Virus record (IMG/VR): IMGVR_UViG_3300044712_001937
Coordinates: 300,703-364,702 of that record
Strand: one strand, 5' to 3'
Length of the DNA: 64,000 nucleotides
Part shown: one piece after another, positions 4,886-40,888 of the stretch
How the letters are laid out: every line of letters starts with the position of its first letter
Position numbering within the stretch: the stretch's first letter is position 1
Notes under the pieces: generated by a model
The model's input: the letters and a program-made list of their open reading frames with translations, nothing else
What the model was told of the DNA's origin: nothing
Databases searched by the model: none
Made by a program: the position numbers and the translations under genes

Positions 4886-4908
4886 CTTAAAATTTTTTAT
4901 AAATACTT

Positions 4909-5981: not shown

Positions 5982-5992
5982 ATAAATTTATT

Positions 5993-6369: not shown

Positions 6370-6370
6370 A

Positions 6371-7537: not shown

Positions 7538-7557
7538 TAAATAGTAAAAATTATAAA

Positions 7558-12488: not shown

Positions 12489-13101
12489 ATTCGTTAAATT
12501 GAAATTCCGGAAAATCTTTTTTTAATTTAGTTTTAATATAATTAACTCGATTACTCACTGTACTACTTGATATATTAAATTCTCTACCAATTTCATTATA
12601 ATCATAGCCATAATTATATTTCATATTAAGAAAAGTAAAATCTTGTGGATTTAATTGAGTAGATATAAAATTAACGGAATTACAATTATCAAAAGCTGTT
12701 GAGCTTGAAGTTGTGAAACAATTATTACTCTGCATTAATGTACCAACTGAATTATTTATAATGAAATTTTCAGAATCTATGGAGCTGGTATAACTTATGG
12801 ATGTTGTATTTGAAGTTAAAGAAATTGTATTACATCGCCATTTATCTATCATATAATGATTAGCAATACTATAAACCCAAGGTTTGAATTTTTTTGTGAT
12901 ATCAAACGAATTTAAGTTCAAAAATATCTTAATCATTATTTCTGACACATCATCATCAACATCACAATTATTTGGATATTTACCTTTTATAAAATGTCTG
13001 ACTATTCTACTATATTTTTCATATAAAAGTTTTTGTGCTGCCTGATTTCCAGACAGTACGTTTTGAATCGTTACTAAATCTTCCTCTATAATTGTTGTCA
13101 T
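12487..13101 (-). CDS. ECF-type sigma-70 family RNA polymerase sigma factor
   Basis: Region 2 (AQKLLYEKY, DDVSEIMIKIF, FKPWVYSIANHYMIDKWR) and region 4 HTH (GYDYNEIGREFNISSSTVSNRVNYIKTKLK). Confidence 0.88.
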   Translation of the reverse strand: MTTIIEEDLVTIQNVLSGNQAAQKLLYEKYSRIVRHFIKGKYPNNCDVDDDVSEIMIKIFLNLNSFDITKKFKPWVYSIANHYMIDKWRCNTISLTSNTTSISYTSSIDSENFIINNSVGTLMQSNNCFTTSSSTAFDNCNSVNFISTQLNPQDFTFLNMKYNYGYDYNEIGREFNISSSTVSNRVNYIKTKLKKDFPEFQFNE

Positions 13102-14092
13102 AAGGATTTACCAATTTTTTTATAAAATAATCTTCTGTTATTAAATCCCTTGCACTATATAATGATTTAATTACTTCATCATCGCCATAATTTCTTCGTA
13201 ATTCATCTAAATCATCATTTGTAGGTAATTTAACAATCTTAACCCGTTCTTCACATCCTATATAAATATCATGTAATATAAAATATAAATCGATACAATT
13301 TTTATATGCATCAGGGTCTAATAATACAATAACATTAGGTTTTAATTCTTTCAGTTTTTTAAATAATGCAGTTCCTATTGTTTTTCCTAACATTGGAATT
13401 GCATTTACAGGTAATGATAACATTTCAAAACCACCTTCAACTAAATAAACTGTTGAATCCCAATTAATAAATCCCTCATTAAAAATGATTGAATCTTTAT
13501 CAGATGGTGGATTATCATATTTTTTCTTTTTTACAGTAGGGTCATAAGTTCTTGCAACAAAATAATTTACTTCACCTTTTATATCATAAGAAGGAATTAT
13601 TATTCTCTTTGCATATTTTCCAGTTATACAAAAACCAAGCCGATATTTTAATATAAGCTCTTTAGATATTTTTCTATCAAGAATTAAATAATTATATGCT
13701 TCAATATGTTCTAAATTAGAAATATCCATTTGAGAAAATGGTATCATTTCAATAGGTAATTGAATTGGAATATATTCTTTTTCAAAATCATCAAAATCAT
13801 ATAATGGTAAAGACCCAACATATGATTTATAAATTTCATAATCTGCAAATGTACCGAATTGTCTAATTAATCTACCTAAACTTCCTGAAAATTTTGGTTC
13901 ATCACATTTCCAACATCTAAAATTTCTTTTATATGTGTTTATTTCAAGATTAAATTTACCATCAGGCTCAGATAATCCTTCCATTTCTTGACAAAGTGGA
14001 CAATTTACTTGCAATTGTTCACTTTGCATGTAACCATTCACATCGCCAAAAATACTTTGAATTATAGAATGAAATTCTTGACCTCTTATCAT
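13019..14092 (-). CDS. DnaG-like DNA primase (Zn finger plus TOPRIM)
   Basis: VNCPLCQ...FRCWKC Zn finger; RIIIPSYD..GEVNYFVAR; TOPRIM motifs VYLVEG and LLDPDA. Confidence 0.85.
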   Translation of the reverse strand: MIRGQEFHSIIQSIFGDVNGYMQSEQLQVNCPLCQEMEGLSEPDGKFNLEINTYKRNFRCWKCDEPKFSGSLGRLIRQFGTFADYEIYKSYVGSLPLYDFDDFEKEYIPIQLPIEMIPFSQMDISNLEHIEAYNYLILDRKISKELILKYRLGFCITGKYAKRIIIPSYDIKGEVNYFVARTYDPTVKKKKYDNPPSDKDSIIFNEGFINWDSTVYLVEGGFEMLSLPVNAIPMLGKTIGTALFKKLKELKPNVIVLLDPDAYKNCIDLYFILHDIYIGCEERVKIVKLPTNDDLDELRRNYGDDEVIKSLYSARDLITEDYFIKKLVNPYDNNYRGRFSNDSKRTVWKSGSTKTFI

Positions 14093-14860: not shown

Positions 14861-16372
14861 TTATCCTTCAATATTTAAATTTGAAGTTAATTCGGCAATT
14901 AATCCCAATTCATTGTTCCAAATAAACGCATCTGCTGCTTTAATAGCACCTATAAAACCTTTTCGATAATGCCATTCTTCAGTTCCAGTTAGACTTGATA
15001 AATAACGTATAGTTACACCTAAATCTTCTTTTAATGTTCTATCTTTATTATCTGTAACATTATATTTAACTGTTTTTTTACGATGAATATGACCTAAATG
15101 CCATTCATGAAATACAGTTTCACTCCAATATTTTTTAGAATGACAATCTGTTGCCATAATTAACGGTAATGCACTTTCTTTTTCTTCTGAACCATGAGTG
15201 AAACCAAGTAATACTTTACCAAATTTATAAAATTTACGTTCTGGAGCTGAATTATCAACATTTACCATATTATCATTCCTAAACCATGCTTCTAAAACTG
15301 AACCAATATAATAATTTCGTTCTAAATCGTGATTACCGGGAATTATTATAACATCTATTGGAACACCTTTTAATTTCATTAAATTAATAGCGTCTACAAG
15401 TAATTCAATTGCTACTTTAAAAGTTTTTTTCCAACGTAAATCTTCATCTTGAAATGTACCTTTTGTTGTAGTATTTAAAATTGTATCAGAATTAAGAAAA
15501 TCTGAACCAACAGGAAATAAAATTCGGGAATATTGAAATCCAGATGCTCTTTTAAGTAATGTTTCAATTGAATACATAAATCGTTCACGAGCAATTTTAG
15601 TATCGTAATTTTCACCAGTTTCACCACCCCAAGCTAATTTACCTAAATGTAAATCAAATATACTTATTTCAAGCAAATTATTTTCATTTCCAACTGTAGT
15701 ATTACAATAAAACCCTTCAATTAATGGTGGTTGATAATTTTTAATTAAATCTAAAAATATATCTGCCTGTGATTTTGTTTCTTCATAAACAACATTTTTT
15801 TCGAGTCTTGCTTTAACTTGAAAATTTTGAAGAGTTTGTGGAGTTTCATTTTTCCAACTTGTAACATCCCATTTATTTACTGTATAATCTTTAACTTTCC
15901 AAAGATTTAAATCAACCTCACATATTTTTAATAATTGGTCTAATGTTTTTACATGATTAACTGGATAGTTTGAACCAGTATTCCAAGTAATTTCACCAGT
16001 ATTACCTTTAACATCAAATTTAATTTTTTCATCATCAGGAACTTTAACTTTAATTTCTTTTCCTGAATTTTCAAGCAATCCCTTATCTTTCCACTCTTTT
16101 ACTTTAGCACCCCTAATATCTTTCAAATTATTTAGATTAATATTATCAATTGGGGTTAACTTATCGATATATTTAGAATATGCTTCATTAAATAAATTAA
16201 AATCTTCATCTTCTAAAGTACCATTTTCATAATTTTCATAAACTAAAGCTTTAATGTTTTTTACATAAGTATCAGAATAACCACATTTAACACATGCATC
16301 TTTAACAGATATATTATTTTTTATTGCATAGTTTATTATTTCAACAGCATTCCTAATTCGAGAAATATTCAT
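14861..16372 (-). CDS. Calcineurin-like metallophosphoesterase with an N-terminal extension
   Basis: DLHLGK, GSDFLN, PGNHD, THG and GHIH motifs, plus an N-terminal helical or HTH-like region. Confidence 0.85.
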   Translation of the reverse strand: MNISRIRNAVEIINYAIKNNISVKDACVKCGYSDTYVKNIKALVYENYENGTLEDEDFNLFNEAYSKYIDKLTPIDNINLNNLKDIRGAKVKEWKDKGLLENSGKEIKVKVPDDEKIKFDVKGNTGEITWNTGSNYPVNHVKTLDQLLKICEVDLNLWKVKDYTVNKWDVTSWKNETPQTLQNFQVKARLEKNVVYEETKSQADIFLDLIKNYQPPLIEGFYCNTTVGNENNLLEISIFDLHLGKLAWGGETGENYDTKIARERFMYSIETLLKRASGFQYSRILFPVGSDFLNSDTILNTTTKGTFQDEDLRWKKTFKVAIELLVDAINLMKLKGVPIDVIIIPGNHDLERNYYIGSVLEAWFRNDNMVNVDNSAPERKFYKFGKVLLGFTHGSEEKESALPLIMATDCHSKKYWSETVFHEWHLGHIHRKKTVKYNVTDNKDRTLKEDLGVTIRYLSSLTGTEEWHYRKGFIGAIKAADAFIWNNELGLIAELTSNLNIEG

Positions 16373-18560: not shown

Positions 18561-19304
18561 TTAAAATTTCATATTTATATCTATTAATCCATTATTCAAA
18601 TCTTCAATTATACTTTCAACACCATATGGTGTATAAATCTCATCAGTTAAATCTAACTTATTATATAAATCACCAATACTTCCTTCAATTTTTATAAATA
18701 AATCTTGATTTGATGGATTTTTTATAAATGTATATTTAACATATGTTTCAATGAAATTTTTCTTCAAAATTAATTGTCCATTTATAACTGCAGTACCTGA
18801 ACCATTTAAGTTATAAATTTCAGTATTAATTTCATCACTTAATAATTGACCACTTGATAAATTAAAAGAAATTGTTGTACCTATATTTCCACTAATACTA
18901 AAATTAAGTATTTTAGTTGATGTTAATGGCTTACCATCTAAAGTTTTAAACCATAAATATAATTCAACAATATTTTCATCAGGATAACCAATATAATGTG
19001 AACTTCTATTAGTTGAATTTTCATCAAAAATTAATAAACTATCTTGAACTTGACCCACCACAATTGAATCACCATTAGGTGCTTTTGTTGTAGTTGTTGT
19101 AGTTATATTAGGATTAACAGTAATCCATTCAGAATATGCACAATTATTTGAATCAGTTATTGTTAATTTATATGTTCCATTAGGTATATTTACAAATTCA
19201 TAAGTACCAACAGCATTATGTATATTAGGTTCAACTATTTCTGGAACTAATTCAGCAACAAACGGTGCAGCACCACTTACTATTGTATATTTAATATTTC
19301 CCAT
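18561..19304 (-). CDS. Putative virion protein with an SprB-like Ig repeat and a poly-Thr linker
   Basis: Likely start MGNIKYTIVSG at 19304, which removes the overlap with the upstream gene; contains GTYKLTITDSNNC and PNITTTTTTKAP. Confidence 0.6.
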   Translation of the reverse strand: MGNIKYTIVSGAAPFVAELVPEIVEPNIHNAVGTYEFVNIPNGTYKLTITDSNNCAYSEWITVNPNITTTTTTKAPNGDSIVVGQVQDSLLIFDENSTNRSSHYIGYPDENIVELYLWFKTLDGKPLTSTKILNFSISGNIGTTISFNLSSGQLLSDEINTEIYNLNGSGTAVINGQLILKKNFIETYVKYTFIKNPSNQDLFIKIEGSIGDLYNKLDLTDEIYTPYGVESIIEDLNNGLIDINMKF

Positions 19305-19312
19305 TTTTACTA

Positions 19313-20980
19313 TTATTGATATGAAACTGATTGAGCAAGACAATAAGATGAATAATCTACAGCATATTCTCCACAAACAGCACAACTAATTCCAGTTAAT
19401 TCAACACATGCATTTAAAACAAGTGAAGCTCCAGATTCAACATAATGAGTTTGAGATAATTGAAAATTCATTGAGTTAATATTGCTTGGATTAACTAAAT
19501 ATTCATAATATTCATAATTTGTACGCATCGCACATGTTTCAGGAGTTCCTTCACCAGCAGCTAACATAGATGATGAATCATTTGTATATATACCACAAAC
19601 ACCACAAGCCATTGAACACACATCATTTTCTAACATACTACCTCCAGATTCAACACATGTGAATGTCAAAAACATTAATTTAAATGATTGTCCTATACTT
19701 AATGAAGGATTGGTGCATATTTTAGCATAGTTATTATAAACTCTCATTGTACAACATCCATCAGGAACTTCTTCATAACTTGATGTTACATCATATAAGC
19801 ATATTTGTATTGGTCTATTAATATTTTCAATATCTTGACATATATTAGTACCTTTTATTGCATTTACACCATTATTTCCAATAAGACCATCAATTACACC
19901 ATGTACACAAGCAGTACCTGTACCTGTAGTAACACAAGCCACTTCTTTATATTTTATAGTATCACCATTACACATATAAAATGTTATATAATCTGAATTT
20001 TCTGATGTTGAACTATTAAAAACTCCTACTATGTTACCTAATTGATAATTATCTGATTGTCTAACAATTTCGATACAACCTGCAGCATTTGTTGCTTTAC
20101 ATATATTACAATTAGTATTATAAATTCCACAAAATATACCTGAAACTGTAACTTCAACACATTTTCCAACAGGAATTTCAGGCGATGCTACAATACATCC
20201 ACAATTTATACATTCAATTCCATTTACATAACATGATTTAGGTACGAAATTAATATATACTGTATCTACTGGAACTGTTTCAGAACAATAATAAGTCATT
20301 CCAATTGTTGATGATGGAAGTGCAATATTAATATTTTTAGAACCGATAGATGTTGGATTTAAAGCTTCGATACATACCGAACCTGAACTTTCAACATAAT
20401 TTGAAGTGCAACACATAAATATATCATAACAAATTTCATCACCACAATTAATAGTAACCGGATAACATGTACTTGTTGGTATTGTTGTTGAAAATAATTG
20501 AATTCTTGGTTGACCATTTGGTTTAATATACGCTGTAATTCCTTGAGTTGTATTAACATTACTTCCACCAACTACTGGATGTAAACACATTGAAATTGTT
20601 TCATTTGCACTAAGATTAGGTATAACAATTTTATTTAATCCACTTGATGTTGTTGAATCAATCATACAATATGAAGTACCTGCTATTTTTGATGAAACAC
20701 CGCATAAATAAATAGTTCTTGTATCTATTACTGATGGTGTTATAGCTAAATCATTAGGAGTACAGAATCCTTGCCATGCAATTTTTCCAATAGCATCTGT
20801 AATTTTCAACTGATAACAAGTATTTGCATTTAAACAACTAAATACATTTATCGAATTTGAATAAGTAGTTCCAGAATGACTAATAATATCACTCTGAAGA
20901 ATGGTTGTACAAGTACTATTATGTAATTGTGCTAAAAATGGTGGACAATTACCACGTATGTTATATCTAATATCACTCAT
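19313..20980 (-). CDS. Cys-rich putative virion fibre or decoration protein with three ~120-aa repeats
   Basis: About 41 Cys in 555 aa (hand count); the N-terminus is paralogous to the downstream gene; lies in the structural operon. Confidence 0.65.
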   Translation of the reverse strand: MSDIRYNIRGNCPPFLAQLHNSTCTTILQSDIISHSGTTYSNSINVFSCLNANTCYQLKITDAIGKIAWQGFCTPNDLAITPSVIDTRTIYLCGVSSKIAGTSYCMIDSTTSSGLNKIVIPNLSANETISMCLHPVVGGSNVNTTQGITAYIKPNGQPRIQLFSTTIPTSTCYPVTINCGDEICYDIFMCCTSNYVESSGSVCIEALNPTSIGSKNINIALPSSTIGMTYYCSETVPVDTVYINFVPKSCYVNGIECINCGCIVASPEIPVGKCVEVTVSGIFCGIYNTNCNICKATNAAGCIEIVRQSDNYQLGNIVGVFNSSTSENSDYITFYMCNGDTIKYKEVACVTTGTGTACVHGVIDGLIGNNGVNAIKGTNICQDIENINRPIQICLYDVTSSYEEVPDGCCTMRVYNNYAKICTNPSLSIGQSFKLMFLTFTCVESGGSMLENDVCSMACGVCGIYTNDSSSMLAAGEGTPETCAMRTNYEYYEYLVNPSNINSMNFQLSQTHYVESGASLVLNACVELTGISCAVCGEYAVDYSSYCLAQSVSYQ

Positions 20981-20981
20981 T

Positions 20982-23249
20982 TTATATCAATGTTATTGTT
21001 TTTGAAACTTTAAAAATTTCAATATTATTATAAAATTCTCTAACTTGAACTGTATAATTACCTATTTCAGTTGAATTAGTATAAAACTTCTTAGTTGTAC
21101 CAACTACACTACCAATTGGTAATTCTTCCCATTTTGTTGGACGTAACGAATTTGTAGGATATGCTGTAAATTGAATATTACCTATAATTGGATTTAATCC
21201 AGCATTAATAGATGCTAAATAATTACTAATTAAAACATATTTTCCATTAACATCACTTCCTTGACCAGTACTAAATGCAGAGTTTAAAGGATTTCCAACT
21301 GCAACATATGGTTTACTAACTTTTGACACAATAGCTTCCGGTGCAGTATTTGGTGATGTAGTACCAGTTACATCAGCTAATGTAATAATATATGATGATA
21401 AGAATGAAAATTGACTACTTAATGACCAAACACCACTTGAAGGACTATACCAAGAAATTGTATTTGGTGTTTCAAACTTACTTATTCCAAGATATGGACT
21501 ACCGTATGTAGTACCAATATTTTCAGGATTACTATAAACATTTATCGATGTAGGATTTCCTTGTAAAATTTGGAAATTAGAATTCAAATGACTATAAGTT
21601 GATATATTATTTATTATTTGTAAAATACTGTTTGGTAATTCAATTGTCGTAACACCAGTATATCTACAAGCTGGTGAACCAAAATCATTAATACTAATAA
21701 AATAATCACCAGCAGTTAAATTAGGTATTGTTATTATTGTATCAGGAGTAAATTCTTCGTAATAATAATCAGCATCATTAGTGTAAAAATGTTGTGAGAA
21801 TATTTTAGGTTTACCTTCAACTGAATATGCAAATACTTCTACCAATACATCACCAGTATTAACTACATTAGTAATTGTAATTTTTCCATCACTATTACTA
21901 TATGAAGTTGGAGATGTAAATTTAATATCTACAGAACTTAAATAACATGCTGTACATCCAATAGAAACATTATCGTTTATTCCGAATTTATAATTAGGTA
22001 ATGTCCAAGACCTATTAGACTTATATGACATTGCAAATAATAATTCTTGGTCTTCAATCACAAATAATTTTAAATCATTAAATATTTTACCAACAACATT
22101 ACCTACAGTATCAACCAAATCATAATAATTTGTATTTAATGATTTTGTGTTACCAGTTAACAATTTAGAACTACCATTAGCAGTTAATGTTAAACCCATT
22201 TTAGCTATTGGTGATTTATGCCACATGATAGTAGGTAATGTTAATATTGGCGTATTTTGATATAATTCTTCAGCATATGTGTTTGAAGGAGATGAATTAG
22301 TATAATGAATTATTCCTAATTTTTTTATTACTGGAGCTTGATTTTGAATATATGAAATAAATCCAGCGTAACTTGAACTATTATATTGGCTAAAACTTTT
22401 TTGAGTTAATGGGTCTACACCTATAATATCTTCGGTATATACTATCGATAAATTCCAAAAAGGAAATGTTATCGTAGGACATTGACAATTTTGTTTAAAA
22501 GCTAATAGTGCATCATCTACATATTCCGTTGAATAATTATCGTAAATTGTACTTGCTCCTGAATAATTTATATAATTATAATATACAATAGCTCCTGCCC
22601 ATACATTTTCTGGAGAATCTGTAAAATCGGGTAAGTTTCTATCTACTTTAATTCTTAAATTATTTGTAACTAATTTACCTGATACAATTTCATCAATTCT
22701 ATATATTAAATAAGGTGTTGGATAATTGCTATTCACAGTATAACCAGTCGTACTTATATTAGAAAAACCATTTACCCATTTTACTAAAATATAATCACCA
22801 ACAGCAGGTTCATTTACATTTCCTAAATATGTTGGTGCTTTACGTAAATTTAAATATTTACCACCTTGAACACCCGGTGCATATATCATAACATCAGGTT
22901 GTTTTACATGGTCACCATCAATGTTAAATGTAGTCACATTATTACTTATAGTAAAAAAACCTAATGGTTCTGCCGTGTTTTGAATTATTGTTGGAGACGA
23001 AGACACAGCAGAAATTATATTAAAATAATCTCCACCTGAATTTTTAGGAATAAATGATAAAATACTTGGATTTTTATCTGCAGGTCTCAATATATTAGAT
23101 AAATGAATATTAGTTAAATTATAATCTATTTCACTATCACCAACAGCATAATATTTAAATCCTAAACTACCTTTTGATAATAATTCTCTACCTTTTGAAG
23201 TAAGTTTAATATTTAAAACTACCGGGTCTTTTTTATCTATAAATGCCAT
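20982..23249 (-). CDS. Virion structural protein (baseplate/tail-associated)
   Basis: The N-terminal KLTSKGRELL..GSLGFKYYAVGDSEIDY is typical of large-myovirus baseplate-region proteins; SprB-like segment SNSDGKITI...NLTAGDYFISIND; late motif (23266-23272). Confidence 0.65.
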   Translation of the reverse strand: MAFIDKKDPVVLNIKLTSKGRELLSKGSLGFKYYAVGDSEIDYNLTNIHLSNILRPADKNPSILSFIPKNSGGDYFNIISAVSSSPTIIQNTAEPLGFFTISNNVTTFNIDGDHVKQPDVMIYAPGVQGGKYLNLRKAPTYLGNVNEPAVGDYILVKWVNGFSNISTTGYTVNSNYPTPYLIYRIDEIVSGKLVTNNLRIKVDRNLPDFTDSPENVWAGAIVYYNYINYSGASTIYDNYSTEYVDDALLAFKQNCQCPTITFPFWNLSIVYTEDIIGVDPLTQKSFSQYNSSSYAGFISYIQNQAPVIKKLGIIHYTNSSPSNTYAEELYQNTPILTLPTIMWHKSPIAKMGLTLTANGSSKLLTGNTKSLNTNYYDLVDTVGNVVGKIFNDLKLFVIEDQELLFAMSYKSNRSWTLPNYKFGINDNVSIGCTACYLSSVDIKFTSPTSYSNSDGKITITNVVNTGDVLVEVFAYSVEGKPKIFSQHFYTNDADYYYEEFTPDTIITIPNLTAGDYFISINDFGSPACRYTGVTTIELPNSILQIINNISTYSHLNSNFQILQGNPTSINVYSNPENIGTTYGSPYLGISKFETPNTISWYSPSSGVWSLSSQFSFLSSYIITLADVTGTTSPNTAPEAIVSKVSKPYVAVGNPLNSAFSTGQGSDVNGKYVLISNYLASINAGLNPIIGNIQFTAYPTNSLRPTKWEELPIGSVVGTTKKFYTNSTEIGNYTVQVREFYNNIEIFKVSKTITLI

Positions 23250-23294
23250 TTATTTAAATTTAATATAAATACACTAATTTTTAATTTATTAACC

Positions 23295-25298
23295 TTACGG
23301 TTGACAAAGAGTTCTTGATGTTGTTGTAGTCACAATATAATCATTATTTTGTGGTACACCATTTGAGCAAAATATATATGGTATTATTTTACCATTTCCA
23401 TATGGATATGCATCTGAAACACATAATATTTTTAAACAAGTTTGATTATACATACCTGCATACAATTTATAACAAATTTTATCTCCATATACAAATGTAA
23501 ATGAACTTTTTGCGTTGTTTCCAACAGTACAATAACAATTTAATGTTGATGGTAATTGACCAGTCGATAAATTGGTATGACATGCAATTTTTTTAGAGAC
23601 TGTAGGATTACTATATGGTGAACACCAAATTTCAACAGTACTTGGAACTGATGGAGTATTACCTCCACATTTTAACGTTACTGTATCGTAACAAATACAT
23701 ACTCTTCTATATAAATTACCTGACACATCTGACACGGAAGCAATACTACTACCTAATTCAAATGTACCTATTTCACAAGAACAATAATTTAAAGTATTTC
23801 CTACATTACTTTCATGATAAGGTATAATTGGTTTTATTAAAACCGGAACATTAACTTTTGTAGCTGTTACTGCAAAACTATCTCTATCAGGTGTGCTTAT
23901 TTGAGGTAGAATAGTTGTTGAAGTACTTGAAACTGAACTTATTCTAATTCCACTTGATAAATTACCTGCATATGCTGTGCCACCAATATTATAACATACT
24001 GAATCACCAGATGTAATTGTGAATTCATAATAAAAATTAGGTTTTGAAGTTGTACCTTCACAAGTACCAAGAGAAACATAACCCGGTTCAGTACCACATG
24101 ATTTATATACCGTAATATACATTGCACCAGTAGATGGTGAATGTTGTGGAGTTGTACCACTTAATACTATATTTACAATGTCACTATTATTAGATATTGG
24201 TGGATTAATTAACAAATTACCACATTTTGTACCAGCATCTACATCAGGTGGATTACTCCATTCAATCGTACTATTACCTAATGCAAAATATATAGGTTGA
24301 ATTGCTTTAGCATAGCTAATATATTTTTCACAAAGACTACTATTAACAGTACTAATATTAGTATTACATCCATCAACAGAATCTATTTTTAAATATGCGT
24401 TACTACTTTCACCACCATTAAAAGCTGAAGCAGATAAACTATAACACATTGATTGATTTTGACATAAAATAAATGAACCTGTTGGAGATACACCGTTTTT
24501 ACTTGTAATATATGCATATTGAACATAATTACCATCACCACTATTACATTTTAATTCTACAGACCCTAAACTATTAGTACCAACATTAGCTACAGTTACA
24601 TTATAATTAACTCTCATACATTCACCATTAGATAATGGTTGGGTAATTTGAAATAAACCTTTTTCAAAACAACCACTACCTGTTAAAGTTTTATATGTTT
24701 CATTTAATGAAATTGTTCTAACACCTTTAGTTGTTGTTGTACTTGGAAGTATTAATGGTAATGAGATTATTTTTTCATATTCACAAACAACTGCATTATA
24801 ACCGGGTGAATAGTCTCTTATTTTAAAAACATAAACTCCATTCATATCTAAATCAGTAAATGTACAATAAGATTGCCAAGGATAATCATCTTCATTACTA
24901 TTTAAAGGATATGCTTTATATTCTAATCTACATCCTACATTACTTTCACCAACATTAATTACACGAACACCATTTAAAAATTTATATACTAAAAATTCTG
25001 GATTTAATTTACAATATAATGGAATACAATCTGAATCATTTTCAGTTGCTCCTGAAAATAAAATTTGTTTTTCAGTATCACTACCAATATCAATATAGTC
25101 TAAATAACTTAAAACTCTATTATCATAATCAATATTATTTAACTTTGATAATTCGTCTACAGTTAATTGTGGAAATGCTACACCTTCATTAACAAATGAA
25201 TTTAATAAATTATATGTTTGACCAATATTAGTACATGAACCTAATCCGCAACTAATTTTGTTACATATGTTTAATATATATTTTCTACTATTTGCCAT
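23295..25298 (-). CDS. Cys-rich putative virion fibre or decoration protein with three ~120-aa repeats and Thr runs
   Basis: About 33 Cys (hand count); repeat motif F-x-x-x-x-G/N-D/Q-x-x-C-Y shared with 19313-20980; contains PSTTTTKG and VTTTTSRT. Confidence 0.65.
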   Translation of the reverse strand: MANSRKYILNICNKISCGLGSCTNIGQTYNLLNSFVNEGVAFPQLTVDELSKLNNIDYDNRVLSYLDYIDIGSDTEKQILFSGATENDSDCIPLYCKLNPEFLVYKFLNGVRVINVGESNVGCRLEYKAYPLNSNEDDYPWQSYCTFTDLDMNGVYVFKIRDYSPGYNAVVCEYEKIISLPLILPSTTTTKGVRTISLNETYKTLTGSGCFEKGLFQITQPLSNGECMRVNYNVTVANVGTNSLGSVELKCNSGDGNYVQYAYITSKNGVSPTGSFILCQNQSMCYSLSASAFNGGESSNAYLKIDSVDGCNTNISTVNSSLCEKYISYAKAIQPIYFALGNSTIEWSNPPDVDAGTKCGNLLINPPISNNSDIVNIVLSGTTPQHSPSTGAMYITVYKSCGTEPGYVSLGTCEGTTSKPNFYYEFTITSGDSVCYNIGGTAYAGNLSSGIRISSVSSTSTTILPQISTPDRDSFAVTATKVNVPVLIKPIIPYHESNVGNTLNYCSCEIGTFELGSSIASVSDVSGNLYRRVCICYDTVTLKCGGNTPSVPSTVEIWCSPYSNPTVSKKIACHTNLSTGQLPSTLNCYCTVGNNAKSSFTFVYGDKICYKLYAGMYNQTCLKILCVSDAYPYGNGKIIPYIFCSNGVPQNNDYIVTTTTSRTLCQP

Positions 25299-25300
25299 AA

Positions 25301-26218
25301 TTAAAATAATATATTTGAAAAACTTTTTTCAGTTTCTTTAATTTCTTTCACGTAGTTAAATGAACAATATTCATCGCTACATTTTAATTCTTGATTAAAT
25401 GGTGATTTTTGATAATTAGTTTTTAAAAAATACAATCCATTATCAATAACAGCACCTGCATTATGATATATATACGTACTTTTCCATCTTTTTATTGAAT
25501 CAGTTGCCCATGAAAAATCTAATTTTTTTATGATTTTAGTATCATGACCAAAATACCATGCATTCCATAAAACAGCCCACATATCTGCAGTCCATGCTTG
25601 AATTGGATGTTCTGGACTATATTTAATAGAAGTTTCAATCATGTATTTATATAATTCTTCAGAATCTTTTTCAACCTTTTTCCAAAATTCACTATTTATG
25701 CCTTTCATTAAATATTGTGCTCCACCAGCATTTTTATCATTATCTTCAACAATTTTTGAGTCAATACCAACTATTTTGCACATATCAATAAACAGGTCAT
25801 TACTTTTACTTTTAATATATTTACTATCAATATATGAACAAGTATCGCTTAAATACCAAATATTATCGTTTAAATATTCATCAAATTTTAATTTTTTAGT
25901 AAATAAAACATCAGGGTCTACATAAAAAAATGTTTCTTTTGACATTTCAGGATATTTTTCAAAAAATTTAGCTAATATATGGGGGCGCATTGATGATGAA
26001 TATTTTGGATATTCTCTTTCATCATTAAAAACATAAAATTTACATTTTAAACCGCCATATGTTATTATTCTGTTTAAAACATCACTTTTTTGTAAATTAT
26101 GTTTACCAATAACATAAATCGTATCTTCTTCATAACCAAATTTTCTAAAATTATAAATTTGTACAAGCATTTGCCATAAAAAATAATTCACATCTGGTAA
26201 CACTACTAATATTTTCAT
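25301..26218 (-). CDS. GT-A glycosyltransferase-like protein resembling peptide O-glycosyltransferases (HPAT/SERGT type)
   Basis: RPHIL..F, DxD motif YVDPDVLF, GGAQYL, QAWTADMWAVLWN and YHNAG; coupled between two structural genes. Confidence 0.6.
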   Translation of the reverse strand: MKILVVLPDVNYFLWQMLVQIYNFRKFGYEEDTIYVIGKHNLQKSDVLNRIITYGGLKCKFYVFNDEREYPKYSSSMRPHILAKFFEKYPEMSKETFFYVDPDVLFTKKLKFDEYLNDNIWYLSDTCSYIDSKYIKSKSNDLFIDMCKIVGIDSKIVEDNDKNAGGAQYLMKGINSEFWKKVEKDSEELYKYMIETSIKYSPEHPIQAWTADMWAVLWNAWYFGHDTKIIKKLDFSWATDSIKRWKSTYIYHNAGAVIDNGLYFLKTNYQKSPFNQELKCSDEYCSFNYVKEIKETEKSFSNILF

Positions 26219-26219
26219 T

Positions 26220-29200
26220 TTATAAAGTTGATGTTGAAATTACCATATTATTTATTTGTGCTGGAACTAATATTGCATTACCATTAGGAGTTATACCAGC
26301 TCTAATATCCCCCACAGTTGTTGATGTTACAGTACCTGCTGGATAACCCGGTTCTTGTACTACTTCATTTCTAAGAATAATATGAATAACATCACCAACT
26401 TCCATTTTAATTAAAGCTGTTTCATAAATATAGTCATCAGCAAGATAATCATCTGAAATTTCATATTTACTATAATCTCTCGCATATACAGAAATTCCAT
26501 TATTTGTAATTATAATACTTGCTTTTGATGTTGAAGTAGTTCCTGAACTACCTGAAGCTATGTATAATAAAGTTGAGAAATCAAAATAAATTAAAGCTGT
26601 ATAGCTTGGAATTAATCCTTCTTGACTAATACCATACGTAATTTCACTTAAACCATCACCAGCTTCAGAATCAATTTCTTTAGTAGTTAAAACAACTGTC
26701 AAAGGACGCATTGTTGTTGTAGTGGTAGTTATTGGATATGTTACAGTCACATTGTTTACGACAAAATTTTCACATAGATTACTAACACAAATTTTATCAT
26801 CAGGATTTTCACTCCATGCACCTACTTTTGTCAATGGAAATTTTAAATAAGTTGCACCATCATCACCATGATATAAAAAGTTATTATCTGTTTTATATGT
26901 GGTTAAACCATCACTATTTCGAGTATTAATAATTCCCATATATACACCACGTTTATATGTGAATTTTTGCCTTGTAAATACAGTATTTCTCACCATTAAT
27001 CCACCTTTTCTCATTATAACTGTTGCAGACAATAATTGGTCTACAAATTTTTGAAAAAATGAATTATATTTACTTAAAAACGAATATAAATTATTAAAAG
27101 TATAACCATTAGAATGTAAAGGATTATCATCAGGAAGTGTACTTCTTTTTAAATAAGTTATATAAATATTTAATAAAGTAGGATACCAACCACCTTTAAA
27201 ATCAGTAATAGTTTTTCTATTAGTTGCATTTATCATTCTTCTTTGAATTAATTCAATAAATTCAAGAAAAGATAATTTACTAATATCACCAATACCAAAA
27301 TCATTAGATATAATTGGGTCAAAAAAATCATTACCTGCAACAATATAATATGCACTAAGAACTGTACCGTATCTTAATCCATTTGGTAAATAAATTTCAT
27401 AAGGGTTACTTGAGTTTAAAGTATAATCAGTTCCGGGTTCTAATGCTAAACCATTTATTAATATTTTAACATTTTCAATATTATTTATTTTATAATTAAG
27501 TTTATATACATATTTGTTTGCTGATTCATTATAATAAATTTTTCCAGTATTAAAACTATCAATTCTAAGAATTTCACTTCTCATACCAATACTTGAACCA
27601 CCTACCACATTTAAATATGAAACTTGTATAATTGGATTTATTGCTAAATACGCAATAACTTCTTGATTTTGAATTATAATTTGATTCGAATTATTTGGGT
27701 CAACAATATAGTCTCCGATAAATTGATTAGTTCCCTTAGTTAATGCAATGCCATTTAAAGTTAATTGAACATCACCACTTGCTGTATTAGGAAGAGGAAT
27801 TATTGTACCTATTGAAGTTGCGTTAATTCTTGTAACCATATAAGTTAAATTAAGACCTGCTACTACCGCAGTATATCCAGTTTCTATATATGTTATTTGA
27901 ACTATATCTCTATTAACACCATCGTTATTAGCATATTCATTAAGAATTAAATTACTTCCACTAATATAATAATCTCCGGGCACTGTTTGCATTCCTGAAA
28001 TTGTATCATATTCTTTAGGTGCTGCTAATAATATACCATTAAGACGTACCTCTAACTCACCAGCACCCTCTTTATAATTTGTGGGTAATTGAAAGACATT
28101 ATAATTCATTCCTCCAACTGGTAATGATAAGTTAATATATGTAATAGGTAATGTATAACCACTTGAATTTGCAGTAAAATCTTTAGTTTTAACATAATCA
28201 TACACATCATATTCAATACCTGACGATGTATCAAGAGTAACATCAATTTCTTTCGTATTTATAACAAGTTTACTATCTGCTTGATAATATTGAGATGTTG
28301 TATCATCAACTCTATATGTTGAGCCAGTTTGAATCCAAGATTTTTTATTATCAACTGTTTGATTTAAATTAAATCCAACCATTCTAAATACATTAAGATA
28401 CGCTTGTCCACTATCGGTATCACCAGACATTTGAAAATAAAAATCAGATGTTTCTAATGGAGCTACTGGATAACCACTTGTATCATATGGTAATGATTGT
28501 GATGGAAAATCTAATTCAGTTAATGTCACTGTACGTGGGTCAATAATACCATCAACAGTATAAACATATTCCGTTATATTTATAAATGGTTCAGGAATAC
28601 CTATTAAAAGAAACATTGATTTTAAAGCTTCTCTTGTACCCTTCCCCTTCCAAAAATAATTAGTATTCATAATAATTCTTCGCCATAATTCAATATCTAT
28701 TTCTGCTGGCATTAAATCAGTATGTAAATTTCTTTCTTTATCATCAATTGTTAAAAAACTTTCGACTAACTCACCTTCATTAACTAATGAAAAATAATTC
28801 CATCCTAATGTTTTAGCTAAATTACTAACTAATTGGTCTGGAATATTATTTATTTTATCATAAGTTACTTTATTTATATAAACTAAAGAATCAATAAATT
28901 CTCTCATTTGGTCAAATTCTCTACCATATATTTTTAACAATTTACTCATTTTACCTTCTGCAGTAAGGTCATAAGTTCTTAACGATGCAGGTGTTAAAAA
29001 TCTGGCAATTAAATCAGTTTTAATTTGGTCATATTTCATACCAATTGTAAGAATTGACTCTAAAAAATTTCTATATGTTGCAGTATTAATATCGAGATTA
29101 TATCCATCATTCGTATTCCAAAACATTAATGAATCATTGTAAATTATCTCTCCACTATCAAGCAAAGTTGGAGTTTTTAAAGTAAATTTAAAACCTTTAT

Positions 29201-29987
29201 TATCTTCTCTTTCTGAAATTACATATTTTTCATAATCACTTAATTGTGCTCTAAATTCTTCAAAAACTAACGTATTTGGTTTAATATGAAAATCAACATT
29301 ACCTGCACTACCGCTAATTGTTGGAAAAGGATTTCCAGTAACTTGAACTTTAACATATCTTCTACTTGAGGTATATCCTGTAAATCCAAGTAAAGAACAA
29401 CTATTTAAATCAGGGTTTAATGATGACCAAATATTAAATTTATCATATGAAATATTTAAATTTCTCAATTCATTATTATCAGGTAATTGTGAATTACCAT
29501 CATTTATTACAATACCATAAGTATTTACAATATAATCAACAGGTATGTTAAATATTGAAATATTAGTCAATTCATTATATGAGAATCCTGAATACGTTAA
29601 ATTTCCACTTCTTTTTATTTTTGAACTAACAAATAAACTTGCAGGATAATCTAATATTATATTTTCAATTGTTATTCTTAAAAATTCATATGCAGAACCA
29701 TAACGAATAAAAGTGTTTAAATCTGATTTATCTAAATTTAAAACAGCATTTGTTGTTTTATCTTGCATTAATTCAGATTGAACATCTGAAATATTCATAG
29801 TTTCGAGTGTTATTGGATAAACAAAACTACTTAAAGTATTACTATAATCTACAAATTTTTTACTATCAAAATTTGATGTAACAGAAAAACTTCCGAATGA
29901 GAATACTACATTAGATGCTGTGTTATCAAAACTATCACCATTTAAATTAGAATCAAGATTGTTATTTACTACTTTAACTTTTGCCAC
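26220..29987 (-). CDS. Large baseplate wedge/tail protein (P2 gpI/T4 gp7-like region)
   Basis: LAKTLGW...WRRII.N..YFWKGKGT motif of tail protein I-like domains; repeated Ig-like V.LNGI.L....DY segments; late motif (30006-30012). Confidence 0.7.
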   Translation of the reverse strand: MAKVKVVNNNLDSNLNGDSFDNTASNVVFSFGSFSVTSNFDSKKFVDYSNTLSSFVYPITLETMNISDVQSELMQDKTTNAVLNLDKSDLNTFIRYGSAYEFLRITIENIILDYPASLFVSSKIKRSGNLTYSGFSYNELTNISIFNIPVDYIVNTYGIVINDGNSQLPDNNELRNLNISYDKFNIWSSLNPDLNSCSLLGFTGYTSSRRYVKVQVTGNPFPTISGSAGNVDFHIKPNTLVFEEFRAQLSDYEKYVISEREDNKGFKFTLKTPTLLDSGEIIYNDSLMFWNTNDGYNLDINTATYRNFLESILTIGMKYDQIKTDLIARFLTPASLRTYDLTAEGKMSKLLKIYGREFDQMREFIDSLVYINKVTYDKINNIPDQLVSNLAKTLGWNYFSLVNEGELVESFLTIDDKERNLHTDLMPAEIDIELWRRIIMNTNYFWKGKGTREALKSMFLLIGIPEPFINITEYVYTVDGIIDPRTVTLTELDFPSQSLPYDTSGYPVAPLETSDFYFQMSGDTDSGQAYLNVFRMVGFNLNQTVDNKKSWIQTGSTYRVDDTTSQYYQADSKLVINTKEIDVTLDTSSGIEYDVYDYVKTKDFTANSSGYTLPITYINLSLPVGGMNYNVFQLPTNYKEGAGELEVRLNGILLAAPKEYDTISGMQTVPGDYYISGSNLILNEYANNDGVNRDIVQITYIETGYTAVVAGLNLTYMVTRINATSIGTIIPLPNTASGDVQLTLNGIALTKGTNQFIGDYIVDPNNSNQIIIQNQEVIAYLAINPIIQVSYLNVVGGSSIGMRSEILRIDSFNTGKIYYNESANKYVYKLNYKINNIENVKILINGLALEPGTDYTLNSSNPYEIYLPNGLRYGTVLSAYYIVAGNDFFDPIISNDFGIGDISKLSFLEFIELIQRRMINATNRKTITDFKGGWYPTLLNIYITYLKRSTLPDDNPLHSNGYTFNNLYSFLSKYNSFFQKFVDQLLSATVIMRKGGLMVRNTVFTRQKFTYKRGVYMGIINTRNSDGLTTYKTDNNFLYHGDDGATYLKFPLTKVGAWSENPDDKICVSNLCENFVVNNVTVTYPITTTTTTMRPLTVVLTTKEIDSEAGDGLSEITYGISQEGLIPSYTALIYFDFSTLLYIASGSSGTTSTSKASIIITNNGISVYARDYSKYEISDDYLADDYIYETALIKMEVGDVIHIILRNEVVQEPGYPAGTVTSTTVGDIRAGITPNGNAILVPAQINNMVISTSTL

Positions 29988-30021
29988 AGGATAATATTTT
30001 ATCTATAAATACGATAAAATA

Positions 30022-30052
30022 AAAAATCCCTGTAAATTAACAAGGATTTTTT
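30022..30052. terminator. Possible intrinsic terminator
   Basis: Imperfect hairpin aaaaaatccctgt...acaaggatttttt between structural genes. Confidence 0.45.
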
Positions 30053-30058
30053 ATTTTA

Positions 30059-30958
30059 TTATATACCGCCTATAACTTCATCAAAATTTTGATTTTCATC
30101 AATATTTGTTCGTTTTTCTTTTACTTCAAACAATGGCACATCTGTAACGTCATCTTTAATATTAAATAAATCAAATTGTTTAGTAATTACTCTATCTTTA
30201 TCATAATGTGTTAATATACCTTTCTTAACATCTTTTACTTGTTCACCAGCAACAATATCCATCAATGTATCGATTGTGTTTTCAACCATTTCTATTTCAA
30301 TAACCAATGGTTCAAAATTAGTATTTAATAATAAAATTTCTTGTCCAGCATTTCCAATAAAAGGTGTTGCATTTGGTTTAACATCTGAACTTGAACTTGG
30401 AGTTACTTGTAAGAATATTTTTGTTCCAGCATCATCAAAACGCCATCTCGTTGCTTTTTGAGTAGTATTACCAACATTTTCTGTAATAGGAGAAACTTTA
30501 TTTGAAGTAACTATATATCTTACAACATTTCTCATTTTAGTACCATCACTGTTAATATATTCGATTCTATACCCTTGTAATGCATTGTTTGAAGTTAAAT
30601 TAGCTGGTAATTTATTTACATCAACTAATATTCCTTTAACTGTTGGTAATGCAGATAAAACTCCACAATCATTAATTGTAGTCAGAATTATTTTAGGTCT
30701 AAGATAAATCGTATAAAAACCTAATTGATTAAATATAGTTGCAGGTAAATTTAAATTATAAATTCCTTCTAATAAATTTTCATGGTTTACTAATTGTTCA
30801 TCTGTGGGCAAATAATTATATGTTATAATATCTGTTGCATTTAATCTAATAAACACATCATTTTTAGTTTCTCTATTTGCTGTATAATTATAAAATGCAT
30901 CAATATCATCAATGCTTACATCTGCTGCTCTTATTGTTCCGTATGTACCTACTGCCAT
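30059..30958 (-). CDS. Putative structural protein
   Basis: 299-aa beta-rich ORF within the baseplate operon. Confidence 0.7.
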   Translation of the reverse strand: MAVGTYGTIRAADVSIDDIDAFYNYTANRETKNDVFIRLNATDIITYNYLPTDEQLVNHENLLEGIYNLNLPATIFNQLGFYTIYLRPKIILTTINDCGVLSALPTVKGILVDVNKLPANLTSNNALQGYRIEYINSDGTKMRNVVRYIVTSNKVSPITENVGNTTQKATRWRFDDAGTKIFLQVTPSSSSDVKPNATPFIGNAGQEILLLNTNFEPLVIEIEMVENTIDTLMDIVAGEQVKDVKKGILTHYDKDRVITKQFDLFNIKDDVTDVPLFEVKEKRTNIDENQNFDEVIGGI

Positions 30959-30959
30959 A

Positions 30960-31418
30960 TTATGTATTATTTTTTATGTAAAAATATTTACCGCCAGCAT
31001 ATAATTTAAAATCACTTAATGATTTAACATGCTCTAAACGATAAAATTTATCAAAAACAGATAATTCTTGTCTTTCTATAAATACATCATCAACTGTTTT
31101 TGGATTGCTTATGATATTATCCTTAATTGGATTTTTATAAATTGGAGCATTAATAAAATTTGGACTATCATATCCAACTCCAATAAATGAATATTTAGTA
31201 ATTTTTGAATTACCTGTAGTTGAAGTAATGATAATATCGTTATATTTAATTCCATCGATATAATAAATAACATTATCAGTATTTGAAATATCATAATCAA
31301 CACCATTAACAATATCACTACCATTACCAAAATATTGTTCCGTAAATATAGAGGTAACTTTATATTTCTTTAATTCATTTAATCTACTGGTACATTCACC
31401 TGTTACTACGTATGACAT
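30960..31418 (-). CDS. Hypothetical protein (baseplate operon)
   Basis: 152-aa ORF tightly coupled to its neighbours. Confidence 0.7.
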   Translation of the reverse strand: MSYVVTGECTSRLNELKKYKVTSIFTEQYFGNGSDIVNGVDYDISNTDNVIYYIDGIKYNDIIITSTTGNSKITKYSFIGVGYDSPNFINAPIYKNPIKDNIISNPKTVDDVFIERQELSVFDKFYRLEHVKSLSDFKLYAGGKYFYIKNNT

Positions 31419-31458
31419 TTAAATTTTAAATTTAAGTAATAATACTATATTAATCATA

Positions 31459-31647
31459 TTAAATAGTATTATTTGATTCATCAAAATAAGCATTAAAAAA
31501 TCCAATATCTTGTAATTCCGAAATTAATCCAAATTTAATATGATAAACAGCATTTAAATCTGGAATAATTATATGACATTTTTCATCACATTCATCTGTG
31601 GTTGTAGTAGTCATTTTACGAAATATTGTTTTTTTAATTTTTTCCAT
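31459..31647 (-). CDS. Small hypothetical protein with a poly-Thr run
   Basis: 62 aa; the start overlaps the stop of the baseplate wedge gene; contains KMTTTTTDEC. Confidence 0.6.
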   Translation of the reverse strand: MEKIKKTIFRKMTTTTTDECDEKCHIIIPDLNAVYHIKFGLISELQDIGFFNAYFDESNNTI

Positions 31648-35895: not shown

Positions 35896-37284
35896 TTAAG
35901 ATACTATTAATGTTTTTGCAACAGCAGCTTCATAAAATTCAACACGTTTTTTAGTAACCTCTGCTAAATTATATTTAACTTTAAAATCTTCATATAAATT
36001 ATCACCTAATTGTTTTCTTAAATCAGCATTTAATATTAATTTTTTAAGATATTTATGCCAATATTTATGTGCATTATCCTTTGCAGGTATTAATACACAA
36101 TTTTCCATATGTTTACCATGAACATTATAAGGAGGTATGTCTGAACATAAGATTGGTAATTTACGTGTCCAACATTCTACTTGTTTTAAGTTAGATTTCA
36201 TTCTATTAAATGAATTATCTGCTAATGGAGCTATAACTATATCAGTTTCATCTAAAACAGTTGCATATGAATTTGCTTTTTGAGTCCAACGTCTTGCAAA
36301 ATTACCTTCATCCTCATACTTAATATTTCTTTCAAAATTCATTAACCATTGAAGATAATCTTGATTTTTAATCATATTATGATTATTTGTTAATATTTTT
36401 TCATAATTATAGTAAACGCTTTCTTCACTTCTAATATCTCTTTGTTGTGATTTAAATACATTACCACGATATTTATCTTTCATATCTTGAGGTAGTTTAG
36501 GAATTTGGTCAACGTCACCTCTTGTTTTATTAATTGCTTTTACAACTTCTGTAGTCCATAATCCCTTTCTTTGTAGTTCAGTAGCAAATTCTTGATTAAA
36601 AGTGATATCAGTAGTATTACCTTCAGTATCCCAACCTGCAATAATTACTTTAAACTTATCTTTCAATTCCGGGTCATTAGATAATACATTAAATACACCT
36701 TCAAGTTGCTCAACATCACCCATATGAGAAGAACCTGCCATATATGTAATTCTTACACGACCATCAGGGTCAGCTTTCCAATTATTTTGGAATTGTTTCA
36801 TCCATATTGGGTCTATTGAGTTATAAAATACACCAATTTTATCGATAGATTTTCCACTTACTTTAGAAATTTCATTTGCAAATAAATCAGTTGTGGTTGT
36901 AACATAATCAGCAATTTTTAAATTTTCAATAATTGGAATATGTAACTTTTTCTCTAAGCTTAAACTATAAAAAGGATGTTTTTTATTTAATTCCCAATAG
37001 TCATCGATATCAGCAATTAAAATAGTTCCAGATTCTCTTAATTCTTTTGCTAATTGAACCATTTGTCTGGTGTCAGATAAAAACTGACGATGATAGTGAA
37101 TTATATGGAATGTTTTTAAATAATCAACAAATTTAGGGTCATTAAAATCTATTTGAGGGTTGATTTCAACATAAAATTTATCTGAATGATTTCTTTCAAT
37201 TTCCATTGCTGGAGTTAGTGTACGAAAATAATTTACACCTGCACCATCAAGATTGTAAAATAAAATTCTAATTTTTCCGTCCAT
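35896..37284 (-). CDS. GT-B glycosyltransferase (GT4-like)
   Basis: N-terminal GVNYFRTLTPA, DIDDYW and TTT..FA; C-terminal DIVIAPLADNSFNRMKSNLKQVE and PILCSDIPPY. Confidence 0.8.
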   Translation of the reverse strand: MDGKIRILFYNLDGAGVNYFRTLTPAMEIERNHSDKFYVEINPQIDFNDPKFVDYLKTFHIIHYHRQFLSDTRQMVQLAKELRESGTILIADIDDYWELNKKHPFYSLSLEKKLHIPIIENLKIADYVTTTTDLFANEISKVSGKSIDKIGVFYNSIDPIWMKQFQNNWKADPDGRVRITYMAGSSHMGDVEQLEGVFNVLSNDPELKDKFKVIIAGWDTEGNTTDITFNQEFATELQRKGLWTTEVVKAINKTRGDVDQIPKLPQDMKDKYRGNVFKSQQRDIRSEESVYYNYEKILTNNHNMIKNQDYLQWLMNFERNIKYEDEGNFARRWTQKANSYATVLDETDIVIAPLADNSFNRMKSNLKQVECWTRKLPILCSDIPPYNVHGKHMENCVLIPAKDNAHKYWHKYLKKLILNADLRKQLGDNLYEDFKVKYNLAEVTKKRVEFYEAAVAKTLIVS

Positions 37285-38623: not shown

Positions 38624-39193
38624 TTATTTTTTTATTAAATTTTGAATTTCCTCATTAATGATAGATAAAATACTGTTTTTAGTCGATGAAATTAATTCCA
38701 ATTCTCCTTTATCAGCATGATAAATATTAAACACAATACCTTGAGGAATTAAAGGAATTGTTTGCATATAAGATTCAATATCCGAATCTCTATCATCATA
38801 AACATTAATTTCTTCTAATTCAGGATATTTTTTCAAATATTCAAGAATCCTATCACCCTTTGTAAGTTCAATAGTTTTCATATCAACTTTATCAACATTA
38901 ATCATGTTAATATCTAAAACTGCTTGAAGACTTGGGCGTAGTTTCTCTCGTCTGGATGTTAATATTATCACTAATGATTCATCATCTTTAATCGCATCAT
39001 TTAAAATACTAAATATTTTTGGAAATGGTTTAATATTAAATACTGTTAAATCTAAACTTTCAGGTCTTCCCCACCAACCAGAATATGTATAAATTTTATT
39101 ATAAAACTTTTCCCATATCAATTTTCCCTTTTCAAAATTTAAAGTATTAATTAATGTTCCATCAAAGTCGAATGCATATAATCTTTTAATCAT
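38624..39193 (-). CDS. HAD phosphatase of the Swiss Army Knife RNA-repair type (HAD_SAK-like)
   Basis: Motif I FDFDGTL, WWGRPESL insert, motif II ILTSR, motif III Lys (TKGD) and motif IV INVYDDR. Confidence 0.8.
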   Translation of the reverse strand: MIKRLYAFDFDGTLINTLNFEKGKLIWEKFYNKIYTYSGWWGRPESLDLTVFNIKPFPKIFSILNDAIKDDESLVIILTSRREKLRPSLQAVLDINMINVDKVDMKTIELTKGDRILEYLKKYPELEEINVYDDRDSDIESYMQTIPLIPQGIVFNIYHADKGELELISSTKNSILSIINEEIQNLIKK

Positions 39194-40415: not shown

Positions 40416-40416
40416 A

Positions 40417-40827: not shown

Positions 40828-40888
40828 AAAAAAATGATTGATAAATTTTATTTAGATTAGGTACGATTTTATTTAAAAATTGTTTCAA

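Follow-up and report, generated by a model that had tools for sequence, protein, structure and literature searches.

The window analysed here, the final 64 kb of the 364,702-bp viral contig IMGVR_UViG_3300044712_001937 (26% G+C; positions 300,703 to 364,702), carries a gene for a 305-residue predicted glycosyltransferase (GT) among baseplate and tail genes whose products contain runs of consecutive threonines (poly-Thr). We consider it likely that this protein is a phage O-glycosyltransferase acting on the poly-Thr stretches ("tags") of the phage's own virion proteins, as the initial annotation of the window had suggested, and the reading draws on the adjacency of the gene and the runs as well as on the way they are present or absent together in two phage groups that are unrelated to each other. 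The enzyme belongs to the functionally unannotated phage family PHROG 4417, and the association of this family with Thr runs is far beyond chance.

The GT gene lies in a baseplate/tail block. In the order of transcription, a gp25-like wedge subunit, a gp6-like wedge subunit, small open reading frames (ORFs), a 299-aa protein and a 1255-aa protein precede it, and 667-, 755-, 555-, 247- and 239-aa proteins follow. A single base separates it from the 1255-aa gene upstream (TAA-A-ATG) and two bases from the 667-aa gene downstream (TAA-TT-ATG), a packing consistent with translational coupling. The protein matches PHROG 4417 end to end (E 2.4e-66, residues 1-297 on profile positions 1-292 of 293), and a word-based protein search returned at least 1,615 relatives, nearly all of ~305 aa, unnamed and of viral-contig origin. 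The gene occurs in 77 sequenced phages, and relatives are encoded at 583 or more IMG/VR loci.

An AlphaFold2 model of the enzyme, made with 30 homologues, reached a predicted local distance difference test score (pLDDT) of 95.4. It forms a single Rossmann-like α/β/α domain that can be superposed on solved GT-A enzymes, and Foldseek placed it among GT-A enzymes of families GT8, GT24 and GT6 (E ~1e-6). The model opens with the first Rossmann strand (residues 2-8), and an N-terminal helix or membrane anchor is absent. D101-P102-D103 comes directly after the strand of residues 96-100, and in an alignment of 34 homologues (36-71% identity) D101, D103, G165-G-A-Q168, Q207, M213, W214, H252, N253, G255 and a few aromatic residues are invariant, M213 and W214 being the end of the segment WTADMW (residues 209-214). 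These residues fit a metal-dependent, retaining-type active site, and the spacing of G165-G-A-Q168, Q207 and H252-N-A-G255 resembles what we take to be the layout of LgtC and glycogenin (DxD, N-x-G, Gln, His-x-x-G). From the model, we predict that the protein is a sugar-transferring GT-A glycosyltransferase whose nearest relatives are retaining GT8 and GT24 enzymes. The initial annotation had described a DxD glycosyltransferase-like gene lodged between two structural genes, had singled out the DPD and WTADMW motifs, and had envisaged a GT-A fold; the junctions, the invariant motif residues and the structural neighbours bear out this description.

The family assignment is less direct. A Pfam search with the window enzyme gave no match at E≤0.1, the 34 family members gave no GT8 (Glyco_transf_8) match at E≤5, and a PDB sequence search with the enzyme gave nothing usable. 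The commonest weak Pfam match in the family, and the only recurrent one, was HPAT (hydroxyproline O-arabinosyltransferase of plants and green algae; PF23452), found in three of the 34 members and not in the window protein. The best of these matches (17.2 bits, E 0.0035, residues 201-247 on profile positions 180-226 of 307) is below the gathering cut-off of 23.9 bits, and its alignment falls exactly on the segment Q-x-W-T-A-D-M-W. By shape, the model aligns with an ESM Atlas cluster of Chlorophyta that is 100% HPAT (template-modelling (TM) score 0.77, 279 residues, root-mean-square deviation 3.2) and with a second HPAT cluster (TM 0.76; 279-282 residues aligned in these comparisons), predicted models standing on both sides. 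The resemblance to the HPATs (CAZy GT95), which the initial annotation had suggested from the two motifs, is thus weak but real. Because both sequence-profile tests fail, we place the enzyme in neither GT8 nor GT95.

HPATs are the nearest named family by shape and, like the enzyme proposed here, are peptide-directed O-glycosyltransferases whose acceptors are stretches of hydroxylated residues within extended peptides rich in Pro. They differ in being type II Golgi membrane-anchored proteins, whereas the phage enzyme has no anchor, and in using hydroxyproline as the acceptor, whereas Thr is proposed for the phage enzyme. The GT8 and GT24 enzymes compared (Gat1, which acts on Skp1, glycogenin, UGGT, LgtC and GlyE) share 8-12% identity with it; among them Gat1 and GlyE, the latter from the streptococcal serine-rich-repeat-protein pathway, add to a sugar that is already in place, whereas transfer of the first sugar to Thr is proposed here, and no GtfA/B-like primer enzyme was seen beside the phage gene. 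Judged by these comparisons, the enzyme probably works most like a cytoplasmic peptide O-glycosyltransferase.

Several further observations concern the enzyme itself. The genome holds a single GT copy; another ORF of 305 aa (10277-11194) was considered as a paralogue and rejected, its only match being to a treble clef. TALE-repeat (Hax3) matches in a PDB profile search were dismissed as chance, reflecting a short "NxGGxQ" resemblance repeated 11 times. When a complex was predicted between the enzyme and the 1255-aa protein (residues 1070-1110), it scored 0.01 (mark 0.34), which weighs neither way on binding. In a Bacteroidota cluster of the ESM Atlas (581 aa), a domain with nearly the same shape as the enzyme (TM 0.94) is fused to a Glyco_transf_7C domain, a modelled arrangement that hints at a two-step glycan in bacteria.

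Thr runs are strongly enriched around the GT gene. The window (20,391 aa, 6.0% Thr) holds seven runs of at least four Thr against ~0.25 expected from composition, the whole genome (540 ORFs, 111,552 aa) holds eight, of which six are within 18.7 kb around the GT gene, and all three runs of five or more in the genome lie within 7 kb of it. The runs use mixed ACT, ACA and ACC codons and are not a simple DNA homopolymer; the mixed codons, the enrichment and the conservation of runs through synonymous changes led us to reject chance and DNA slippage as their source. The initial annotation had listed Thr runs in four neighbouring proteins, and all of its coordinates are right, but conservation in orthologues is confined to the two T6 runs: in sister phages, the T5 run of the 62-aa ORF (probably incidental, to judge from its orthologues) and the two T4 runs of the 667-aa protein are broken.

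The T6 run of the 1255-aa protein is the foremost candidate for an acceptor site. In nine orthologues, with 32-41% identity over the last 260 residues, it is kept as Y-P-x-T(5-7)-x-x-P with four invariant Thr columns and constitutes the most conserved feature of that C-terminal region, and the conserved columns use all four Thr codons (ACA, ACT, ACC and ACG) in varying order, a pattern indicating that selection acts on the identity of the Thr residues. In farther orthologues, the run stands at the same boundary with a length of 5-23 or has shifted to a separate small protein. The orthologues are alike from residue 1 to ~1070 and divergent beyond, and the T6 run is therefore a linker to a variable distal domain. 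The other T6 run lies in an ORF of 274 aa whose true start is probably the ATG at 19304, giving a protein of 247 aa; this protein has weak CarboxypepD_reg/SdrD_B matches on residues 54-97 and an orthologue in one of the sampled loci (L007).

The association extends well beyond the window. We fetched 80 IMG/VR loci through the enzyme alignment (36-100% identity) and counted the ORFs within 10 kb, which contain 384 runs of at least five Thr against 1.5 expected from composition (~260-fold), with at least one run in 68 of the 80 loci; the co-occurrence of GT and poly-Thr genes that had been anticipated for other phages is therefore found. No other residue forms more than six such runs, and Ser, which is equally abundant, forms two. 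Among 378 mapped runs, 218 (58%) are in the gene directly upstream of the GT gene and 375 are on its strand, and Pro is the residue that most commonly precedes a run.

All seven contexts inspected in cultured phages (phiFL1A, iLp84, MA9V-3, 1706, VPE25, Semele and RQ1) show poly-Thr on neighbouring virion proteins. Enterococcus phiFL1A has three Thr runs at the end of its capsid protein and T5-S-T6-SS-T7 at the end of its tail tube, and the GT gene comes next. Lacticaseibacillus iLp84 has a terminal T7-S-K on its capsid protein as well as on its tail-tube protein, together with a 126-aa protein of 34% Thr, and the GT gene lies between them. Lactococcus 1706 has T9-HHD at the end of orf10 and T10-HHD at the end of orf13 (labelled in GenBank as capsid protein/protease and major structural protein, respectively), with the GT as orf14. 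The tail tube of Enterococcus VPE25 terminates in T10-AGK, that of Staphylococcus RQ1 has a terminal T7-P, with an ORF of 49% Thr coming after it, and the herellevirus Semele and the Chryseobacterium phage MA9V-3 have poly-Thr neighbours likewise. The GT gene adjoins tail-tube or capsid genes in phiFL1A, iLp84, 1706 and RQ1, and in temperate phages of 36-40 kb it sits in the middle of the head-tail operon. In RQ1 (locus L285, 6229-6931), the tail-tube gene overlaps the Thr-rich ORF of 103 aa, and this overlap may encode a frameshift-extended form of the tail tube with a long tag.

The enzyme and the runs also come and go together, in two unrelated phage groups. Within the lineage of the window, where the 299-aa neighbour served as the marker and whole records were checked, eight GT-bearing contigs have runs and one, a truncated contig, has none, while 23 GT-less contigs have none and two have runs (Fisher p = 2e-5, a value that overstates independence because the counted contigs are related to one another). 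The two loci with runs and no detected GT have a single T5 each, one of them being a 24-kb fragment and the other not searchable. The density of runs is 61 per 100,000 aa with the GT and 1.2 without it. Several GT-less contigs are nearer to the window (65-71% identity in the marker) than many GT-bearing ones, and the marker tree requires a minimum of 4-5 changes in the trait. In the Firmicutes siphophages, we compared tail-tube orthologues at 50-60% identity. Thr tails are present in the GT-bearing phiFL1A and R3.3, whereas in five complete GT-less genomes (Streptococcus Javan505, Javan311 and Javan47, Pediococcus cIP1 and Lactobacillus phiJL-1) the tail tube ends, or continues with unrelated residues, exactly where the Thr tail would begin. 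The capsid orthologues behave in the same way, with poly-Thr tails in the presence of the GT and none in the GT-less genomes.

We weighed these results against other explanations of the gene and the runs. One is that the enzyme glycosylates phage DNA bases or the host wall or teichoic acid, serving restriction evasion or phage exclusion, and that the Thr runs are ordinary flexible linkers of a kind frequent in structural proteins. We regard this as improbable: it leaves unexplained the ~260-fold excess of Thr runs, and of Thr runs only, beside the gene, the loss of runs from orthologous proteins where the gene is missing, and the position of the gene in the head-tail operons of temperate phages. 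The low-complexity regions of phage proteins are generally enriched in Ala, Gly and Pro and not in Thr (PMC6821194), which also speaks against ordinary linkers. A target in DNA or the host envelope is disfavoured because of the head-tail operon position, the preference for Thr over Ser, and the occurrence of tags on multiple unlinked virion proteins to either side of the gene. To our knowledge, the head-tail operon is not the usual place of DNA-hypermodification or serotype-conversion genes.

Another explanation holds that the enzyme and the Thr-linked modules form a recombination cassette, or that adjacent variable domains are what is modified, the run being a spacer or docking element. The run of the jumbo-phage lineage does mark the border between a conserved body and swappable C-terminal domains, and both gene and runs are patchy on the marker tree, as this explanation would have it. 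In the siphophages, however, each tag is a bare tail at the C-terminus, without a further domain beyond it that could be the target, and the tagged capsid, tail-tube and decoration proteins are encoded kilobases apart on both sides of the gene, so that no shared cassette is apparent; we therefore give this explanation little credence as well. Use of the GT-A scaffold for some other transfer onto Thr, such as that of a sugar-1-phosphate (phosphoglycosylation), seems to us very improbable.

Several observations weigh against glycosylation of the phage's own poly-Thr tags. The support for virion glycosylation is wholly comparative. The tagged proteins of the window phage are presumed to be structural from the position of their genes, without a cultured relative, and three of the five runs originally listed in the window are not conserved and may be weak or incidental. 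A test on independent pairs was underpowered, with four pairs, ~2.6 of them changing in the same way and ~0 in the opposite way (sign-test median p 0.25). Some loci carry the enzyme and have no Thr run within 10 kb, namely L013-L016, L020 and L063 (enzyme 57-58% identical, contigs of 92-256 kb) and a few others. In the reverse direction, among viral records chosen solely for an in-frame T7, mostly fragments, the enzyme was found in only seven of 44 whole records and three of 53 loci; seven of 44 is far above a plausible base rate for the enzyme, and it also shows that the tag occurs without it. The 76.8-kb record L091 has no PHROG 4417 homologue despite T5, T12 and T13 tails on its capsid, decoration-like and tail-tube-like proteins. 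These exceptions suggest that the targets lie elsewhere in some genomes and that other enzymes, or none, serve other phages.

If virion proteins are indeed the target, the enzyme would be a cytoplasmic, metal-dependent GT-A protein of GT8-like architecture, distantly related to HPAT-type peptide O-glycosyltransferases and produced along with the late structural proteins. It would move a sugar from a nucleotide-sugar donor to the hydroxyls of consecutive Thr residues in short, exposed poly-Thr stretches, before or during virion assembly. In this jumbo phage, the tags would be interdomain linkers, namely the T6 before the C-terminal β-sandwich of the 1255-aa protein and the one in the small two-domain tail protein, while in Firmicutes siphophages and herelleviruses they would be C-terminal tails of capsid, tail-tube and decoration proteins. 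A possible benefit is a stiff, protease-resistant and hydrated linker, or a masked particle surface; the purposes raised in the initial annotation, namely protease resistance, host-glycan mimicry or shielding, are likewise conjectural. Extended to the whole family, poly-Thr would be a portable "glyco-tag" read by an HPAT-like cytoplasmic enzyme, common to thousands of phages and building mucin-like brushes on capsids, tail tubes and baseplate linkers, a generalization to which we give somewhat better than even chances.

In the searchable literature, which included few subscription journals, the mycobacteriophages are the only described case of phage-encoded virion glycosylation, and we found no account of the present enzyme family, of poly-Thr phage tags or of their host breadth. 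In Che8, Corndog and Myrna, phage glycosyltransferases are held to decorate capsid and tail-tube subunits near their C-termini (Freeman et al. 2023, as cited in PMC12619734 and PMC10877033), and the Corndog glycosyltransferases are placed inside the structural operon (PMC4351075). A GT gene within the late structural block is thus common to Corndog, the window phage and the other phages described here. The mycobacteriophage system and the present one differ in their hosts, Actinobacteria there versus those of Bacteroidota-type jumbo phages and Firmicutes phages here, and, compared by description, in equipment, with several glycosyltransferases and a methyltransferase there versus one PHROG 4417 enzyme here. 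Virion glycosylation in mycobacteriophages alters antibody recognition. In the papers that could be read, no poly-Thr tag is reported for that system. The capsid glycosyltransferase A64R of PBCV-1 belongs to a eukaryotic giant virus and to an atypical N-linked glycan pathway, with no poly-Thr acceptor.

Should the proposal be right, PHROG 4417 would gain a function and an evolutionary link to plant and algal peptide O-glycosyltransferases, and bacterial viruses would possess an equivalent of mucin-type O-glycosylation whose evolution was independent of the mycobacteriophage system. At the small end, glyco-tag phages would include temperate siphophages of 36 kb that infect lactic acid bacteria, enterococci and staphylococci, and at the large end jumbo phages of 365 kb. 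Self-glycosylation would be widespread, also among the Enterococcus and Staphylococcus phages of interest for therapy and the Lactococcus and Lactobacillus phages of the dairy. A coat of this kind would matter for the immunogenicity and stability of phages, for their adsorption and for their binding to mucus. A tag of 5-10 Thr together with one enzyme could then be used for glyco-engineering in bacteria, as a soluble O-glycosylation system with a very simple acceptor.

Table 1. Location of the enzyme gene, the Thr runs and the accompanying genes; positions are those of the window except in the last row.
Feature	Position	Strand	Details
GT-A glycosyltransferase-like enzyme, soluble, 305 aa (PHROG 4417)	25301..26218	-	ATG start; profile match, model
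T6 run in the 1255-aa protein	26712..26729	-	residues 1087-1092, motif Y-P-x-T6-x-x-P; translation, orthologues
T6 run in the small tail protein	19086..19103	-	kept in the sole orthologue found
T4 runs in the 667-aa protein	24729..24740, 23319..23330	-	not kept as runs
T5 run in the 62-aa ORF	31597..31611	-	interrupted in all orthologues
Further T4 run, outside the finding	36889..36900	-	in the 462-aa protein
1255-aa baseplate-module protein, directly upstream of the GT gene	26220..29987	-	body ~1-1070, T6 linker, C-terminal β-sandwich ~1095-1255
Small two-domain tail protein, 274-aa ORF	18561..19385	-	T6 linker after an Ig-like N-terminal domain
667-aa variable tail protein, Cys-rich (4.9%), directly downstream of the GT gene	23295..25298	-	translation
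62-aa ORF with the T5 run	31459..31647	-	translation
299-aa conserved baseplate-module protein, lineage marker	30059..30958	-	alignment, 52-66% identity; 589 IMG/VR relatives
Baseplate wedge subunit (gp6-like), 614 aa	31647..33491	-	phrog_219, E 1.2e-19
Baseplate wedge subunit (gp25-like), 132 aa	33503..33901	-	phrog_261, E 2.2e-16; phrog_43, E 1.6e-11
755-aa and 555-aa distal tail proteins, without Thr runs, context	19313..23249	-	translation
Poly-Thr-tailed proteins of record L091: HK97-type capsid, decoration-like, tail-tube-like	4643-8486 (of L091)

The ends of the genome share an overlap of 127 nt, giving a closed assembly, and nearly all genes of the window are on the minus strand. Megablast of the region against sequenced phages found no DNA-level relative, and tblastn of the 1255-aa and 755-aa proteins against the same phages found nothing, while metagenomes commonly yield sister contigs of 300-360 kb. 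Two of the distal tail proteins are unusually rich in Cys, the 555-aa protein (19313-20980, minus strand) with 41 residues (7.4%) and the 667-aa protein with 33; even sister contigs offer few homologues of them or none, and none of the 555-aa protein, and on this comparison we class both as apparently hypervariable distal tail proteins. Close to the baseplate genes, a 462-aa protein (35896-37284, minus strand) matches phrog_7162, "glycosyltransferase", over its C-terminal third (E 8e-29); it has tblastn likeness to phi92 gp164-like proteins and no Pfam match, and is a candidate for a second enzyme that adds sugars.

Elsewhere in the window, two paralogous large genes on the minus strand (56606-60283 and 62369-64000) are 78-85% identical over blocks of 240-300 nt and carry periodic repeats of 48-51 nt; the exact 127-nt overlap of the genome ends implies that the second of them continues at the start of the contig. 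An RNA-repair-like cluster (38624-43132, minus strand) includes a 747-aa protein with a tRNA nucleotidyltransferase domain (phrog_2244, E 2e-67), a HAD_SAK_1 phosphatase and a weak match to a tRNA-ligase cyclic-phosphodiesterase. GIY-YIG homing-endonuclease genes, one of them with NUMOD domains, are found at 61347-62249 (minus strand) and at 53479-54372, the latter among the few plus-strand genes. A replication and repair set on the minus strand (7558-10287, 13019-14092, 14861-16372, 46703-50395 and 51601-53433) comprises a Rad50/SbcC-like ATPase with a zinc hook, a primase-like protein, an SbcD-like exonuclease, a DNA polymerase and a helicase.

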